From IMG/VR virus record IMGVR_UViG_3300021197_001489, positions 1-64,000 of that record: 64,000 nt of DNA; one strand, given 5' to 3'. The translations under genes and the position numbers were made by a program. Below the pieces are notes generated by a model. It did no database searches and was not told where the DNA came from. It was given only the letters and a program-made list of their open reading frames with translations. Of this stretch, positions 31,474 through 54,074 are shown in pieces. The number at the start of each line of letters is the position of its first letter. Position 1 is the first letter of the stretch.

Positions 31474-31966
31474 CGGACATGAAGCTGTTAAATTCTTTTA
31501 CGGCACTGAAGTAGAACACACACCAGCATATGGTAAGCAAACACTGTTTGTGGTAGGTGTACAACCAGTTGAAGATATTGAGAAAGCATACAAAGACTGC
31601 GAACACATCTTTTTTGGTGCTAATCACAGCTACGATCCTCCTAAAGACAGCATTGAAGAATATGGAGAATGGGAATACATGATCAAGTATTTCCTCAAGC
31701 AGGGCATATTGTGTACGCTAGATGTGCCATACAGTCAACTGGAAGAGATTCACGATGATGGTTACGATGAATACAACAACTTTATAGCACAGTTGCGTAT
31801 CAGTATTCCTTATGTCAGCTCGTACAACTATAACACAATGGTCAAAATTGATGATAAAGACTTTGACGCAACCAACCCGGGCGTGTGGACACACAACCTA
31901 CACAAACTTATGGACAGGACTGTGTTTACTCCATGGAGTGACTACAGCAAAGACGAGGTAGTATAA
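31463..31966 (+). CDS. Hypothetical protein of the deazaguanine cluster
   Basis: GTEVEHT, HIFFGANHS; coupled between TGT-like and T-fold genes. Confidence 0.6.
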   Translation: MNRDGHEAVKFFYGTEVEHTPAYGKQTLFVVGVQPVEDIEKAYKDCEHIFFGANHSYDPPKDSIEEYGEWEYMIKYFLKQGILCTLDVPYSQLEEIHDDGYDEYNNFIAQLRISIPYVSSYNYNTMVKIDDKDFDATNPGVWTHNLHKLMDRTVFTPWSDYSKDEVV

Positions 31967-32391
31967 TGAATCAAGAACAGCGTGAAAATATTGAACACAG
32001 TAAAGATGTTGCTCGTCGATCAATTTGGGTAACATTTCAGCAAGAAGGAATTCACAAGTACCCTGCAGCACTGGATGACCCAAAGCTGGCAACAGGCGAC
32101 TGGGATGACGTTTCTTTTTTAGGATACCCACATCGTCATATGTTTCACTTCAAAGTGGCAATTGATGTATTTCACAATGACAGAGATATTGAGTTTATTC
32201 AATTCCAGCGTTGGCTAAAGCGTCTTTACAGCGGAGATATCTTACAACTTGATTATAAAAGTTGCGAGATGATTGCAGACGAGCTATATACACACATAGC
32301 TGGCAAGTATCCAGGCCGTAACGTTGTTATTAATATAAGCGAAGATGGCGAAAACGGATGCGTTATCAGTTACCCTTCAACTAGTCATTAA
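31966..32391 (+). CDS. T-fold (QueD/PTPS-like) protein
   Basis: EGIH, HRHMFH, EFI, SCEMIA, SEDGENG resemble the H/HxH/E pattern of PTPS. Confidence 0.55.
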   Translation: MNQEQRENIEHSKDVARRSIWVTFQQEGIHKYPAALDDPKLATGDWDDVSFLGYPHRHMFHFKVAIDVFHNDRDIEFIQFQRWLKRLYSGDILQLDYKSCEMIADELYTHIAGKYPGRNVVINISEDGENGCVISYPSTSH

Positions 32392-34833: not shown

Positions 34834-35416
34834 CCGGTTTACAGAGTTTGAACAAGCATTAAGCAAGTTTACTGGCGCACCGTATGTGGTCCTCACTGAC
34901 TGTTGCACACATGCTATTGAACTTTGTTTGCGCTATAAAACCCCAGGGCCTTGTGTTATACCTGCACACACCTATCTAAGCATTCCGATGACTTTTCACA
35001 AACTAGACATTCCATACTACTATGACACAAACAATGACTGGCAGTATGAATATAGACTAGTACCTAGCAACATCTGGGATAGTGCCAGAGCATTTGATCG
35101 TGGTATGTATCGTACAGGTGCGTTACAGTGTCTAAGTTTTGGACACAGCAAGCGACTTGAAATTGGGCATGGTGGTGCTATTCTCACAAACAAAAAACAC
35201 GAGTATGATGCACTACGGCGAATGGCATATGATGGAAGAGATCTAAATATCTCACCGTGGCAAGATCAAAAAGTATTCCATGTTGGGTATCACTATAAAC
35301 CCAGTATTGAAGATTGCGAGAAAGGTATACACATGCTCGCAGAAAACAAACTTAAAACCAAAGAGTCACAATTGGTAGAGTATCCTAACTTATTAGATAT
35401 ACAAATCCAGGATTGA
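34823..35416 (+). CDS. Short DegT/DnrJ/EryC1-type PLP aminotransferase
   Basis: TDCCTHAIEL, WDSA, CLSFGHSK (PLP Lys), GGAILT; probable GTG start 34823. Confidence 0.75.
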   Translation: MSFDRFTEFEQALSKFTGAPYVVLTDCCTHAIELCLRYKTPGPCVIPAHTYLSIPMTFHKLDIPYYYDTNNDWQYEYRLVPSNIWDSARAFDRGMYRTGALQCLSFGHSKRLEIGHGGAILTNKKHEYDALRRMAYDGRDLNISPWQDQKVFHVGYHYKPSIEDCEKGIHMLAENKLKTKESQLVEYPNLLDIQIQD

Positions 35417-35417
35417 C

Positions 35418-35446
35418 TTGACAGTTTACATAAATAACCGTACAAT
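35418..35446 (+). promoter_or_regulatory. Dual promoter: sigma70 box with a late box in its spacer
   Basis: TTGACA-17 nt-TACAAT with ATAAATA at 35430-35436. Confidence 0.65.
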
Positions 35447-35496
35447 ATAATTAACTTATTGTGGTCATCCTCGACCCAAACTCGGAGAATCATTAA

Positions 35497-36192
35497 ATGA
35501 CAATCAAAGAAAAAATTAAACAAAGACTACAAGACGCCAACGTTAGATACTGGGCCAACGACAACATTGCTGATTACCTTGAAGAAGGTGAAAAGCAACA
35601 GTTACTTGAAGAGGCAGTTCCTGCTTTTGAAAACATGTTACAACATCTGCTAATTGATACTGAGACAGACCCTAACAGTCAAGATACTGCAAGGCGTATG
35701 GCTAAGATGTATATCAATGAAATTATGAGCGGACGTTACGAGAAAATGCCTAATCCAAGTGCATTTCCTAACTACATTGAAGGTGGTTATGAAGGCATGT
35801 TGGTAGTGAGAAGCGAACTTACAAGTTTATGTTCGCACCATCACCAAACAGTAAAAGGTGTGGCATACATTGGTATCATTGCTGGTCCTAAACTATTGGG
35901 ACTTAGCAAATATACAAGAATTGCACAGTGGTGTGCTAGACGCGGGACACTACAAGAAGAACTAAATGTAATGATTGCTGATGCAATACAAAGAGAAACT
36001 GGCAGTGACAATATTGGTGTATATGTACAAGCAACACATGGTTGTTGTGAGAACCGTGGCATTATGGCAACCAGTAGTTTGACTCAGACTACAGTTTTAC
36101 GTGGTGCGTTTAAAAAAGATGCTGATGTTAGAAAAGAATTTATTGACAATGTAAAATTGCAACAAGACAATAGTAGGTATACTTGTAGTTAA
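35497..36192 (+). CDS. folE: GTP cyclohydrolase I
   Basis: TARRMAK, SLCSHHH, GLSKYTR, LQEE, HGCCENRG. Confidence 0.95.
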   Translation: MTIKEKIKQRLQDANVRYWANDNIADYLEEGEKQQLLEEAVPAFENMLQHLLIDTETDPNSQDTARRMAKMYINEIMSGRYEKMPNPSAFPNYIEGGYEGMLVVRSELTSLCSHHHQTVKGVAYIGIIAGPKLLGLSKYTRIAQWCARRGTLQEELNVMIADAIQRETGSDNIGVYVQATHGCCENRGIMATSSLTQTTVLRGAFKKDADVRKEFIDNVKLQQDNSRYTCS

Positions 36193-36249: not shown

Positions 36250-37320
36250 ATGAAACTATTTAAATTCCTGGCAGTAGCCCTGTCAGTGTTATTCTTCAGT
36301 GTTTCAGCAAATGCTGGAGATAAACTAAAGGTCGGATTTGTATATGTTGGGCCTATAGGTGACCATGGATGGACTTATCGTCACGACATTGGTCGTCAAC
36401 AAGTAGAAGAAGCATATGGAGACAAAGTTGAAACAGTGTTTGTTGAAAGTGTGCCAGAAGGTCCTGATGCTGAACGTGTAATGCGTTCAATGGCAAAAGG
36501 TGGAGCAGACATTATCTTTGCAACCAGTTTTGGCTATATGCCATCAATGCTTAAAGTTGCCAAGGAGTTTCCAGATGTAGCATTTGAACATGCAACTGGT
36601 TACAAACGTGCAGACAATATGGCAACATATGGCTTACGTCTATATCAAGCAAGACATGTACAAGGTATTATTGCAGGTATGATGACAAAGACAAACAAGA
36701 TTTGTTATGTTGCTGCTTTCCCAATTCCAGAAGTTATTCGTGAGATTAACACATATTACATGGGTGCAAAGAAGATGAACCCTGACGTAGAGATCATGAT
36801 TACTTGGGCCAACACCTGGTATGATCCAGGCAAAGAGTCACAGGCTGCTAAAGTTATGATGGCTGAAGGTTGCGACATGGTTGCACAGCACACTGATTCA
36901 CCTGCTCCATTGCAGGCTGCACAATTAGAAGGTAAATTAGGCTTTGGTCAAGCAAGTGATCAAATTAAATTTGCTCCTAAGGCACAATTGACTGCAACTA
37001 TTGACAACTGGGGTCCTTACTATGTAAAGCGAGTTGGCGAAGTAATGAACGGCACTTGGGCAACTGGTGACTACTTTGGTCATATGAATGACGGTTCCGT
37101 TCAAATGGCACCGTTTACTAACATGCCAGCAGATGTTGCTGCTAAAGCAAACGAAATCAAGAATGCTATCGAAGCAGGCAAGTATTTTGCATTTACTGGT
37201 CCACTCAAGGACAACAAAGGCAAAGTACAACTTAAAGCGGGCGAAATTGCAGACGACGGACATCTTAATAGTATGATGTATTATGTAGAAGGCATTAACG
37301 CACAAGTGCCTGGTAACTAA
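36250..37320 (+). CDS. BMP-family ABC substrate-binding protein (purine/nucleoside-type)
   Basis: Signal peptide; VGFVYVGPIGDHGWTYRH, IFATSFGY, WANTWYDPGKE, QHTDSPAP. Confidence 0.88.
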   Translation: MKLFKFLAVALSVLFFSVSANAGDKLKVGFVYVGPIGDHGWTYRHDIGRQQVEEAYGDKVETVFVESVPEGPDAERVMRSMAKGGADIIFATSFGYMPSMLKVAKEFPDVAFEHATGYKRADNMATYGLRLYQARHVQGIIAGMMTKTNKICYVAAFPIPEVIREINTYYMGAKKMNPDVEIMITWANTWYDPGKESQAAKVMMAEGCDMVAQHTDSPAPLQAAQLEGKLGFGQASDQIKFAPKAQLTATIDNWGPYYVKRVGEVMNGTWATGDYFGHMNDGSVQMAPFTNMPADVAAKANEIKNAIEAGKYFAFTGPLKDNKGKVQLKAGEIADDGHLNSMMYYVEGINAQVPGN

Positions 37321-37322
37321 AA

Positions 37323-38183
37323 ATGATTCCAGTTATTGATTTCACAAGCGAAACAGTACTGGAAGAGATTCGCGAAGCCTACACAACAGTAGGCTTCGCT
37401 GTCCTTACCAATACACTTAACCAACAAGACCAACAAACCATGGAAAACTGGTTTGACTTTATGAAGCAGTTCTTTGAACTAGACTTGCATACCAAAAAGA
37501 AATACAGTTACCAAGCAGAAAACAATCTTGGATACAGTGTTATGGGCGCAGAAAATGTAGACCCAACTGCTCCTAAAGACATGAAAGAAAGTTTCAATTA
37601 TAACAACACTCGTATGCCAGACGAACTATGGCCTACTGAGATAGACTTTTTTAAAGTTACAGCATTAAATTCTGTGCGTATTGCAGATAATTTAACTTTG
37701 CGTATCCTTGAAAAGTTTGATACAATCCTCGACTGCGGCACTACACTGGTAGATGCGCATCAGGATCCTTATAATACTACTCGTGTTATTCACTATCCTG
37801 CGTACACAGGTCCACTTGAAGATAAACAAATGAGAATAGGAGAACACAGTGATTACGGCACTATTACACTTCTTTGGCAGATTAATGACGTTCCGGGGCT
37901 CGAAGTCCAAGATCTCGAAGGCACGTGGCACCCGGTGCCGTATGCAAATGATGGAGTAGTTGTTAACATAGGCGACTTACTACAGCGTTGGACCAATGAC
38001 TACTTCAAATCAACAAAACACAGAGTTGTAAACAGCCACATAGATCAAACACGTTACAGCATGCCGCATTTTGTAGACCCTACCCCAGGAACAATAGTGG
38101 CAAACTTGCGTGACGAGGATGCAAAGTATGATCCTATCGAAAGCAAGGAATACTTGATGTGGCGATTAGCACAGAGTTATTAA
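37323..38183 (+). CDS. 2OG-Fe(II) oxygenase, isopenicillin N synthase-like
   Basis: HSD...H (GEHSDYGTITLL, KHRV) and RYS 2OG-binding motif. Confidence 0.9.
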   Translation: MIPVIDFTSETVLEEIREAYTTVGFAVLTNTLNQQDQQTMENWFDFMKQFFELDLHTKKKYSYQAENNLGYSVMGAENVDPTAPKDMKESFNYNNTRMPDELWPTEIDFFKVTALNSVRIADNLTLRILEKFDTILDCGTTLVDAHQDPYNTTRVIHYPAYTGPLEDKQMRIGEHSDYGTITLLWQINDVPGLEVQDLEGTWHPVPYANDGVVVNIGDLLQRWTNDYFKSTKHRVVNSHIDQTRYSMPHFVDPTPGTIVANLRDEDAKYDPIESKEYLMWRLAQSY

Positions 38184-38706: not shown

Positions 38707-39183
38707 ATGCCATATTACAGCACAAAAACATACGGACACAACATTGGACTAAGTGCAGTGTTTCGCCAACCACACGCAGATCATTCGCATTGCAAGTTCT
38801 TGCATGGATACAGTTTACAATTTAAATTTGTATTTGGTTGCAGAGATCTTGACAACAAAAACTGGGCAGTTGACTTTGGTGGCTTAAAGCCGCTTAAACA
38901 ATGGCTCGAAGATAGTTTTGATCATAAAGTTGTATTAGATGAAAATGATCCTCACTTGGATGACTTTCGAGTACTAGAAGAAAAAGGCCTAGCACAACTT
39001 AACATTGTTGCAGGTGTTGGCGCAGAAAAGTTTGCAGAACATGCATGGCGCTTTGCTGACAAACTTATCCGTGAAGCAACTGATGACCGTTGTTGGTGCG
39101 ACAGTGCAGAGTGTGCAGAACATGGTGCTAACAGTGCCATCTATACACCATTTATAATCCGCAAAGAAAGGTTTACTGAATAA
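38707..39183 (+). CDS. queD: 6-carboxytetrahydropterin synthase
   Basis: [32 protein letters not shown]. Confidence 0.8.
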
Positions 39184-39800
39184 TGTCATTGATCCCAATG
39201 GTAGTAGAGACTACCTCTAAAGGCGAACGTGCATACGATATCTACAGTCGCTTGCTAAAAGATCGCATTGTAATGCTAAACGGTGTAGTTGAAGATCAGA
39301 TGGCAAACAGTGTAATTGCACAGTTGCTATTTTTAGAATCAGAAGATCCTGACAAAGACATCTTGCTATATATTAATTCACCAGGCGGGCAAGTAAGTGC
39401 AGGACTTGGTATATATGATACAATGCAGTTTATCAAGTGTGATATCAGCACTGTGGTTATTGGACAAGCATGTTCAATGGGCAGTTTCCTTGCACAAGCA
39501 GGCACAGCAAAAAAGCGTATTGTGCTTCCTGAATCGCGCACAATGATTCACAGAGTAAGTTCAGGCACACGTGGCACATCAGGTACTGTTCATGTACAAG
39601 AACTTCAATTTGAAGATGCATTGCGCAGTATGGAAGAGTCTAAGAAAGTCAATCGACGTCTTACTGAACTTTATGTAAAACATAACACAGCAGGCAAGAC
39701 CTATGATGAGATGGCAGAAACAATGAAGTTTGACACATTTCTAACAGCACAGGAAGCAGTTGAATGGGGACTTGCAGACCGGGTAATGGAGAATAGATAA
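39183..39800 (+). CDS. clpP: ATP-dependent Clp protease proteolytic subunit
   Basis: [23 protein letters not shown] (Ser), MIH (His). Confidence 0.95.
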
Positions 39801-40642
39801 TGCCTTTTAATATTGAGGCAACTAAAAAAATATCTGTGCTGTGCGCAACACGAGGTCGTCCACAGATGATCATGGAAAGTATGCAAAGCATGCTAGCCAC
39901 TGCTGACGATCCTGACAGTATTGAGTTTTTACTTGCCATCGATGATGACGATCAGGATACCATTGATTTTGTACAAAGTGATATTGTACCTGAGTTTGAA
40001 GAACGTGATCAAGACCTATATGCATTTGTGCAACCAAGATTAGGGTATGCTAGACTTAATGAATATTACAATCAGTTAGCTGGGGAGAGCCATGGAGAAT
40101 GGTTGATTGTGTGGAACGATGATGCCAGAATGGAAAGTCAAGGCTGGGATACTGAAATCCTCAGCCACAGCGGCAAATTTGCAGTACAGCGGTTTAACGA
40201 CAACCACGGACACCCATATGCTATTTTTCCAGTTCTTCCACGTGATTGGATTATAATGTATGGTTGTATATCACCGCACCAGATTGTTGATGGATGGGTT
40301 AGCCAAGTGTGTTACATGAATGACGCAATAATTCAACTTAAAAGTACTTGCTTTCATGACAGACATGACTTGACAGGTAACAACAATGATACTACCTATC
40401 AAGAGAGAAATCCACAGCAGAACGAAGGCAATCCAGAAAATCCCAAAGACTTTCTCTATCCAGCAACACACCAGTTAAGAATACAGTGGGGCTTCAAAAT
40501 GGAATGGCTACGCAAGTTGCTCAAGCAAGACAATGGCTATCTTGACAGAGTCAAGCGGGGTGAAATTGATGTATGGACTAAAATGCGCGAGAATGATCCT
40601 AAAAAGTTTTTGGGCACGTTTAAGGTAGACGTAGGTGGTTAA
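39800..40642 (+). CDS. GT2-like glycosyltransferase
   Basis: ATRGR, IDDDD, WNDDA, GWD; paralog of the 22167 ORF. Confidence 0.7.
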   Translation: MPFNIEATKKISVLCATRGRPQMIMESMQSMLATADDPDSIEFLLAIDDDDQDTIDFVQSDIVPEFEERDQDLYAFVQPRLGYARLNEYYNQLAGESHGEWLIVWNDDARMESQGWDTEILSHSGKFAVQRFNDNHGHPYAIFPVLPRDWIIMYGCISPHQIVDGWVSQVCYMNDAIIQLKSTCFHDRHDLTGNNNDTTYQERNPQQNEGNPENPKDFLYPATHQLRIQWGFKMEWLRKLLKQDNGYLDRVKRGEIDVWTKMRENDPKKFLGTFKVDVGG

Positions 40643-40677: not shown

Positions 40678-41265
40678 ATGAAAAAAGTCTATGTAACATG
40701 GCACGATGTACAGCGGCAAACACAAGAAATACTTAGGCAGTTGCAAAAAGATTGTTGGAAGCCGGATTACATTGTAGGAGTTACACGTGGCGGATTAACA
40801 CTTAGCAATCTGCTTAGTCAATACTTGGACATCACAATGTACACACTTGATGTAAGACTGCGTGATGGTAAACATGTCCCATGTGAAAGCAATACCAAAC
40901 TTGCAGAAATAGCATTTGGAATAAATGATGGTAGATCAAAAGGCGCACGTTGGGATGTTGGGCAACGTAAAAAAGTGCTGATAGTAGACGACATCAATGA
41001 TTCCGGGCAAACTATTAACTGGATAAAAGCAGACTGGGAACACACTATTAGTAGTAAAATACACGAAGATGTTGCCTATGTGTGGGATACTGTTTGGAAC
41101 GACAGTACACGTTTTGCAGTACTCTATGATAATGTAGCAAGTGATGCAAACTTAAAAGTATCTTATGCTGCGGAAGAAATAAACAAAGTTGAAGATCCAA
41201 GCTGGGTTGTTTTCCCTTGGGAAGAATGGTGGAGCAGATGGGATCCTAATGAGGAGATAATGTAA
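40678..41265 (+). CDS. Type I purine phosphoribosyltransferase (Gpt/Hpt-like)
   Basis: GVTRGGL, VLIVDDINDSGQT PRPP loop, WVVFPWE. Confidence 0.85.
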   Translation: MKKVYVTWHDVQRQTQEILRQLQKDCWKPDYIVGVTRGGLTLSNLLSQYLDITMYTLDVRLRDGKHVPCESNTKLAEIAFGINDGRSKGARWDVGQRKKVLIVDDINDSGQTINWIKADWEHTISSKIHEDVAYVWDTVWNDSTRFAVLYDNVASDANLKVSYAAEEINKVEDPSWVVFPWEEWWSRWDPNEEIM

Positions 41266-42137
41266 TGAGCAAAGTTAAGATAGCAGAAATCTTCTACAGT
41301 CTACAAGGTGAAGGCAAGTGGGCAGGAGTACCTAGCGTATTCTTGCGCAGCTTTGGTTGTAACTTTGAATGTAGAGGCTTTGGGATGCCTGCTGGAGAAC
41401 ACACTGACAATCCAGAGCAGATTGCCAAAGACGTTGACAAGTTTGAAAAATATGAAGACTTGCCGCTAACTGAGTTTGGTTGCGATAGTTACGCTTCATG
41501 GCACAAGGACTTTAAAAAGTTTAGCCCTGTTATGGAATCTCAGGATATTGTGCAACGCATGCACAAGTTGATTCCAAACAACCGTTGGAGCGATGGTAAC
41601 CAATTTGGACAAGATGTACACTTGGTTATCACAGGCGGTGAACCATTGCTAGGTTGGCAACGTGCTTGGCCTGGCATTATCAAATTGTGCAAACTTTCTG
41701 GATTGCAAAACATTACATTTGAAACAAATGGCACACAGCCACTAAGTGACGAGTTCTGTAAGTTCTTAAACGAGTTTACTGAGTTCGGACGTTACCGTGA
41801 TCGACTTACATTTTCAGTAAGTGCAAAATTGCCTTGTTCAGGAGAAAAGTGGGAAGATGCTATCAAGCCTGATATTATCAAGCACTACCAAAGTCACGGA
41901 CATACTTTTCTTAAGTTTGTTGTTGCTACAGAAGCTGATGTTCAAGATGTAGAACGTGCTGTTAGCGTGTACAGAGATAATGGATTTCATGGACCAGTAT
42001 ACTTGATGCCAGTAGGCGGCGTTCCAAATCAGTATCATTTGAATGTCAAAGATGTAGCAGCACTGGCAATGACAAAAGGGTATCGTTACAGCCCAAGATT
42101 GCAAGTAGATATATGGAAGAACGCATGGGGAACCTAA
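41265..42137 (+). CDS. queE: 7-carboxy-7-deazaguanine synthase (radical SAM) with split Cys motif
   Basis: IAEIFYSLQGEG...VFLR.FGC, ITGGEP, ETNGT, SVSAK, LMP, SPRLQ. Confidence 0.88.
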   Translation: MSKVKIAEIFYSLQGEGKWAGVPSVFLRSFGCNFECRGFGMPAGEHTDNPEQIAKDVDKFEKYEDLPLTEFGCDSYASWHKDFKKFSPVMESQDIVQRMHKLIPNNRWSDGNQFGQDVHLVITGGEPLLGWQRAWPGIIKLCKLSGLQNITFETNGTQPLSDEFCKFLNEFTEFGRYRDRLTFSVSAKLPCSGEKWEDAIKPDIIKHYQSHGHTFLKFVVATEADVQDVERAVSVYRDNGFHGPVYLMPVGGVPNQYHLNVKDVAALAMTKGYRYSPRLQVDIWKNAWGT

Positions 42138-49408: not shown

Positions 49409-49484
49409 GCTGGTTTAGCTCAGTTGGTAGAGCAATGGTTTTGTAAACCATAGGTCGGGAGTTCGAGCCTCTCAACCAGCACCA
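49409..49484 (+). tRNA. tRNA-Thr (TGT)
   Basis: 76-nt cloverleaf, anticodon arm ATGGT-TTTGTAA-ACCAT, GTTCGAG T-loop, encoded CCA. Confidence 0.97.
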
Positions 49485-53278: not shown

Positions 53279-53355
53279 GGTTCCATAGCTCAGCTGGATA
53301 GAGCAACTGCCTTCTAAGCAGTAGGTCGGGAGTTCGAATCTTCCTGGAATCGCCA
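53279..53355 (+). tRNA. tRNA-Arg (TCT)
   Basis: 77-nt cloverleaf, ACTGC-CTTCTAA-GCAGT anticodon arm, encoded CCA. Confidence 0.97.
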
Positions 53356-54000: not shown

Positions 54001-54074
54001 AGGGGATAAGTGTTACGGTAGCACGACAGGCTCCAACCCTGTAAGCGTGGGTTCGACTCCTACATCCTCTGCCA
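54001..54074 (+). tRNA. tRNA-Trp (CCA)
   Basis: 74-nt cloverleaf, ACAGG-CTCCAAC-CCTGT, G73 plus CCA. Confidence 0.9.

Follow-up and report, generated by a model that had tools for sequence, protein, structure and literature searches.

A conserved leader with a predicted mini-pseudoknot upstream of folE in uncultured marine jumbo phages

We analysed the first 64,000 nucleotides (hereafter the window) of a 316,012-bp contig of an uncultured marine jumbo phage (IMGVR_UViG_3300021197_001489), which is estimated to be 91% complete. The window encodes a GTP cyclohydrolase I (FolE) of 231 aa, preceded by a near-consensus promoter and by a short hairpin next to the Shine-Dalgarno sequence (SD), and surrounded by several genes related to 7-deazapurine synthesis (Table 1). 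The family-B DNA polymerase of this phage is closest to those of Sinorhizobium phage Phosso (51%) and Agrobacterium phage Atu_ph07 (46%), and near-identical sequence is present in marine and seawater metagenome runs from about eight studies. Two metatranscriptomes contained only fragmentary contigs, without information on transcript start or expression.

Table 1. Features of the folE leader and its genomic context (window positions; letters of the leader are given as RNA).
Position	Strand	Feature	Supporting observation
35418..35446	+	Predicted sigma-70-type promoter (TTGACA at 35418, 17-nt spacer, TACAAT ending at 35446); predicted transcript start near 35453	11 of 12 consensus matches; in relatives the -10 box ends mostly 7-13 nt before the stem
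35463..35466	+	P1 5' strand (GGUC)	Pairs with 35473-35476
35467..35472	+	Hexaloop AUCCUC; UCC (35468-35470) is the proposed P2 5' strand (anti-SD); C35472 is at the position of the preQ1-I specificity base	35471 variable and C35472 near-invariant in relatives; AUCCAC in 33, AUCCUC in 15 and AUCCCC in 4 of 55 distinct cores
35473..35476	+	P1 3' strand (GACC)	Pairs with 35463-35466
35477..35483	+	Linker, proposed L3 (CAAACUC)	AAC..UC near-invariant in relatives
35484..35487	+	Shine-Dalgarno GGAG; GGA (35484-35486) is the proposed P2 3' strand	Invariant; a start codon follows 6-8 nt later in most relatives and 9 nt later here
35497..36192	+	folE, GTP cyclohydrolase I (231 aa, ATG start), the putatively regulated gene	Pfam PF01227, 2e-37; NCBIfam FolE, 1e-40, below the curated cut-off
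36250..37320		PnrA/Bmp-like lipoprotein (a nucleoside-binding ABC substrate-binding family)	Directly after folE with the next gene; in relatives this place is usually taken by the QueE-like gene
37323..38183		2OG-Fe(II) oxygenase	As above
31966..32391	+	DpdL-like QueD paralogue (proposed CDG decarboxylase)	32% identity to phiST CGPG_00067, E 1e-13; LGYPHRHMF fits the LxxxHRHxF signature (PMC10516641)
38236..38637		HIT gene	
38707..39183	+	QueD-like 6-carboxytetrahydropterin synthase	Pfam PF01242; 44% identity to phiST QueD
39800..40642		280-aa ORF	No BLAST similarity to phiST DpdA3
40678..41265	+	Xanthine/guanine phosphoribosyltransferase (PRT)-like gene	Homologues near folE in 150 of 280 loci
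41265..42137	+	QueE-like radical SAM gene (CDG synthase-like)	PHROG 2076, 5.6e-51; in relatives follows folE directly in 70 of 96 loci
49409..49484		tRNA-Thr (TGT)	
53279..53355		tRNA-Arg (TCT)	
54001..54074		tRNA-Trp (CCA)	

The initial annotation described a GGUC/GACC stem with an AUCCUC loop, a 7-nt linker and GGAG, and this observation is confirmed exactly as given, including the capacity of loop UCC to pair with GGA of the SD. The predicted RNA 5' end lies about 10 nt before the stem, and the 25-nt element would then make up almost the entire 5' untranslated region (about 45 nt) of the folE message. In this single sequence the structure is no better than chance, with a minimum free energy of -9.1 kcal/mol (z = -0.87; 38 of 200 shuffled sequences fold as well) and -4.0 kcal/mol for the hairpin alone. 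A 4-bp stem plus a 3-nt complement to the SD is expected by chance, and thus the case rests on comparison with relatives.

To determine the extent to which the leader is conserved, we first retrieved 80 IMG/VR loci encoding FolE proteins 66-87% identical to that of the window (subfamily 1), most of which showed the same leader with different stems. A DNA pattern that ignored the stem returned at least 120 loci. Of the 85 hits with four of four stem pairs, 81 are followed by folE, three are cut by a contig end and one has none, whereas the 21 hits with two or fewer pairs had no folE. Some hits precede a second FolE subfamily only about 37-39% identical to that of the window, and 80 loci of this subfamily 2 were also retrieved. 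As a MAFFT alignment placed a one-base indel inside P1, we used an ungapped seed alignment to build a covariance model (R1), and aligned further sequences to the model. R1 finds the element in 63 of 80 subfamily-1 loci, always immediately 5' of folE and with nothing else at E<=1 in 0.55 Mb, and directly before folE in 33 of 80 subfamily-2 loci, with one weak extra hit at E<=5 in 0.42 Mb (locus L249, E 1.6, gapped over the motif; L numbers denote individual retrieved loci). The 316-kb genome of the window holds a single hit at E<=10 (45.7 bits); E-values from R1 are rough. Overall, the element is found in well over a hundred related viral contigs. About 20% (subfamily 1) to 60% (subfamily 2) of the related folE genes do without it, and in these loci folE mostly abuts an upstream ORF directly or has a plain leader. 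Other genes behind the same promoter type in these phages have plain leaders.

In cultured phages we did not detect the element. The nearest FolE relatives (Phosso, Vibrio phage 2.275.O and RHph_I1_18) lack it, and blastn searches with both main variants gave only chance hits in coding DNA. In a partial pattern scan of bacterial and archaeal genomes, only one of the 120 hits examined was genuine, on a 4-kb contig binned with a Lishizhenia MAG and probably viral, while the rest were chance hits in GC-rich DNA; thus absence from bacteria is not proven. A loose pattern also picked up a hairpin before the next gene (36219, Bmp), which has no Rfam match and which we treat as chance. Literature searches found no description of such a phage folE leader.

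The P1 stem is established. In the two protein-anchored sets 99-100% of cells are paired and three of the four pairs change on both sides (A-U, U-A, G-C, C-G), with covariation scores of 0.454 and 0.435 against 0.126 and 0.094 in shuffles (0 of 500), although the sequences all derive from uncultured contigs and are not independent samples. Controls in which the 3' partner was slid fall to 0.07 or below. At least a dozen different stems occur, and a U-G outer pair fits RNA of the + strand. Part of what the initial annotation gave as refuting its reading was a lack of conservation or covariation among homologous leaders, and the opposite is clearly observed. About 15 positions in the loop, linker and SD are near-invariant: the loop is AUCCNC with position 5 free, the linker keeps AAC(A)UC next to GGAG, and insertions occur only at the 5' end of the linker.

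These patterns make a DNA-level operator, in which the inverted repeat would bind a dimeric repressor, essentially excluded. The inverted repeat, with its 6-nt spacer, does lie at about +10 to +24 of a strong promoter. However, the half-site sequences change freely while complementarity is kept, the conserved parts are the asymmetric loop and the one-sided linker plus SD, one G-U pair fits RNA only, and the element always keeps a fixed distance to the SD and not to the promoter (4-37 nt from the -10 box).

The proposed second helix (P2) between loop UCC and GGA of the SD involves bases that are invariant, which precludes a covariation test, and the SD is constrained by the ribosome in any case. 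Three rare variants (L016, L278 and L406) remain compatible with pairing. In targeted scans of the commonest stem background (AGAC/GUCU) the only loop variant found is a C-to-U change that gives a G-U pair; L016 also has C-to-U, and L278 has U-to-C together with GGGAG, giving CCC:GGG. Two low-scoring, apparently decayed copies (L053 and L271) do not fit. In addition, a closing A-U pair of P1 goes with an extra A three nt before GGAG in 12 of 12 distinct cores, whereas C-G, G-C and one G-U closing pair go without it in 43 of 43. An H-type fold would bring the 3' end of L3 to exactly this place; however, the association may reflect only two ancestral haplotypes that spread by recombination. The P1 hairpin alone is marginal (-2.3 to -4.3 kcal/mol across variants), so extra stabilisation is plausible.

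The initial annotation compared the leader with preQ1-I riboswitches, about 30-nt H-type pseudoknots that sequester the SD of Que-pathway genes, while noting that it did not match their canonical consensus. A search of the window against Rfam (4227 families) at gathering score returned only three tRNAs, and neither the leader (35300-35600) nor the other main variant (L179, 3770-3880) gave any hit at E<=10, including to PreQ1 (RF00522, gathering score 39 bits). preQ1-I is nevertheless the nearest functional analogue. The layout parallels features of preQ1-I (types I-III) described in PMC11625349, namely AC or UC immediately before the P1 3' strand with C as the specificity base and, if the inferred fold forms, an adenine-containing L3 and the SD in P2. 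Here the loop ends in AC in 33, UC in 17, CC in 4 and GC in 1 of 55 distinct cores, the final C being kept in all of them, although the degenerate copy L271 has U. The conserved G at the 3' end of the P1 5' strand, which in preQ1-I forms the closing pair and contacts the 7-aminomethyl group, is absent (closing pair C-G in 37, A-U in 12, G-C in 5 and G-U in 1 of 55 cores), as would be expected if a ligand lacked that group. The U or UU that directly follows the P1 5' strand in preQ1-I is also absent: the first loop base is A (G or U in single cases), and U is second and would also be needed for P2. The linker holds a conserved AAC but is only 7-8 nt and ends in (A)UC, rather than being an A-run ending CUA. 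In preQ1-I an A-rich L3 lies in the P1 minor groove, and the link between closing pair and extra A would fit such a contact here. The element is about 25 nt instead of about 34, with a 4-bp P1 and a 6-nt loop against about 11-12 nt.

Among cultured relatives, the folE leader of Vibrio phage 2.275.O (L283, 2741-2771; MG592671.1), a jumbo phage that has QueC, QueF and YhhQ, gives a sub-threshold hit to Rfam PreQ1 (12.5 bits against 39, E 2.4) that includes the hallmark A-run ending CUA. This may be a divergent true preQ1-I upstream of a phage folE. The folE leader of Sinorhizobium phage Phosso (L282, about 2880-2945; PV764938.1) has a 4-bp stem GUGG/CCAC, a 13-nt loop ending in UC and a long A-rich tail ending AAUAACUU before AGGAG. 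R1 does not detect it, but it could be an expanded cousin of the compact element.

The THF-II riboswitch (folE motif) shares a location in the 5' UTR of folE and, if the inferred fold of the phage element forms, an RBS inside the structure, but is a hairpin of about 50-60 nt with P1, an asymmetric bulge and P2, the RBS forming the right shoulder of P1 (PMC6800512). It is found in Rhizobiales and binds THF/DHF. The phage element has one 4-bp stem with the SD outside it and a different consensus, gives no Rfam hit, and is surrounded by genes for 7-deazapurines, not folate.

We then examined the pathway context. The genome of the window and a complete 364-kb relative with terminal repeats have no QueC or TGT/DpdA hit above Pfam thresholds, and about 2 Mb of flanks of 280 loci hold no homologue of a phage QueC, QueF or phiST DpdA3. 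A remote homologue of DpdA3, including the 280-aa ORF, cannot be excluded. Both genomes do carry QueD, QueE and DpdL homologues, and the window also has HIT genes. QueE-like, QueD-like, DpdL-like, PRT-like, HIT and YhhQ-like transporter genes are neighbours of folE, an association with 7-deazapurine genes that the element shares with preQ1-I; homologues of a YhhQ/COG1738-type transporter, as annotated in Vibrio phage 2.275.O, occur in 21 of the 280 loci. The DpdL-like protein carries the signature that Cui et al. link to a proposed CDG decarboxylase giving 7-deazaguanine (PMC10516641). The gene set resembles that of Cellulophaga phage phiST (dDG) but adds a purine phosphoribosyltransferase, and no DpdA3 is detectable, which may mean that the base is made into a nucleotide rather than swapped into DNA. 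The likely products are therefore CDG or 7-deazaguanine and their nucleotides, not preQ1. The inference in the initial annotation of a phage translational switch sensing a guanine derivative, by analogy with preQ1-I, is partly supported: the conserved, covarying leader that includes the SD holds, but the pathway is not that of queuosine/preQ1, and a ligand, if there is one, is more likely 7-deazaguanine or CDG.

We interpret the element as a cis-regulatory RNA specific to the leader of folE, or of a small ORF followed by folE. The comparative data establish the 4-bp hairpin, its conserved hexaloop, the spacing of 7-8 nt to GGAG and the link to folE, and we hold this part with very high confidence. 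That loop and SD pair in a compact H-type pseudoknot (P1 4 bp, L1 1 nt, P2 3 bp, junction NC, L3 7-8 nt) that would block 30S binding is inferred, and is somewhat more likely than not. Further inferred, including the binding of any ligand, is that the fold is stabilised by a purine-like metabolite that stacks between P1 and P2 and pairs with the invariant junction C, as in preQ1-I. In this view, the product of the phage's own QueC-less pathway (7-deazaguanine, CDG or a nucleotide of these) would repress translation of the first enzyme, which consumes GTP. We favour such a metabolite-sensing riboswitch only tentatively, at slightly less than even chance, as it rests on sequence comparison alone.

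Alternatively, the hairpin loop and adjacent linker/SD could be recognised by a protein, either FolE itself (autogenous repression) or another phage or host factor. Phages classically use protein-bound translational operators of just this size, and in phage T4 the gp43, gp32 and RegA operators are short hairpins or pseudoknots overlapping or next to the SD, usually bound by the gene's own product. The small size, the sequence-specific loop next to the SD and the invariant single-stranded nucleotides fit this reading, and the single copy per genome tied to one gene is the pattern expected of autogenous control. However, the same RNA serves FolE proteins that are only about 38% identical, no RNA-binding domain was seen nearby, and the anti-SD complementarity and the link between closing pair and linker A have no obvious role in a simple loop-recognition model. 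In four loci (L236, 2100-2474; L126, 548-934; L134, 1895-2281, - strand; L159, 1479-1874) the element precedes an unrelated 125-132-aa ORF without Pfam match that is followed by folE. We rejected this ORF as a trans-acting factor because it is too rare (4 of 280 loci) and absent from the genome of the window. Overall, we consider a protein-bound operator unlikely.

A ligand-independent structure appears equally unlikely. Such a 5'-terminal hairpin or constitutive mini-pseudoknot could set a low, fixed rate of folE translation, stabilise the mRNA 5' end or act as a thermometer. The hairpin starts about 0-6 nt from the predicted 5' end, a position known to protect mRNAs, and 64 of 156 distinct element-led genes (41%) start with UUG, an unusually high share of a weak start codon that fits deliberately low expression. 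Moreover, ligand-free H-type pseudoknots of about 26-28 nt exist, as in luteovirus -1 frameshift signals. That of BWYV (~28 nt), the nearest physical analogue, has nearly the same dimensions (S1 4-5 bp, L1 1-2 nt, S2 3 bp, a junction nucleotide and a 7-nt adenine-containing loop in the S1 minor groove), which shows that a fold of this size is physically possible without a ligand; it acts, however, inside coding sequence on elongating ribosomes, whereas the phage element lies at the predicted mRNA 5' end, contains the SD and is tied to one metabolic gene. On the other hand, a stabiliser or damper would not need about 15 near-invariant unpaired nucleotides kept across such divergent FolE proteins, other genes behind the same promoter type lack the element, and the marginal stability of P1 argues against a robust constitutive fold.

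A bolder possibility, which the data allow but which remains doubtful, is that the element is a previously undescribed riboswitch class and, at about 25 nt, the smallest natural aptamer known. It would be a stripped-down preQ1-I-like pseudoknot tuned to a 7-substituent-free or 7-carboxy 7-deazapurine (7-deazaguanine or CDG, or their nucleotides), used by marine jumbo phages to throttle GTP cyclohydrolase I while they rebuild their guanine pool for DNA modification. If it binds a metabolite, it would lower the size limit for natural aptamers below the 34-nt preQ1-I, add a ligand (7-deazaguanine or CDG) for which no riboswitch is known, and show that phages feedback-regulate their own DNA-hypermodification pathways at the RNA level. 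A 25-nt ligand-responsive SD switch would also be a useful synthetic-biology part. Even if a protein binds it, the element is a clean, abundant and well-defined translational operator with a ready-made covariance model, and it marks a widespread, uncharacterised pathway in marine jumbo phages with a DpdL-like and a purine PRT-like gene but without detected QueC or DpdA.

Related phages share a promoter type with CTAAATA inside the spacer of a TTGACA/TATAAT pair, found before folE and before other genes (e.g., L184, 7597; L096, 1753; L168, 3005). The genome of the window has only three sites of the looser form TTGAC..TAAATA..-10, two of which are identical copies at 212558 and 283784. Finally, two folE leaders that lack the element (L028 and L052) share, about 40-60 nt before folE (locus position ~3000), another small hairpin (GG..UAAUAUAU..CC) next to a GGGAGG/GGGAAG box, which may represent a second leader type.
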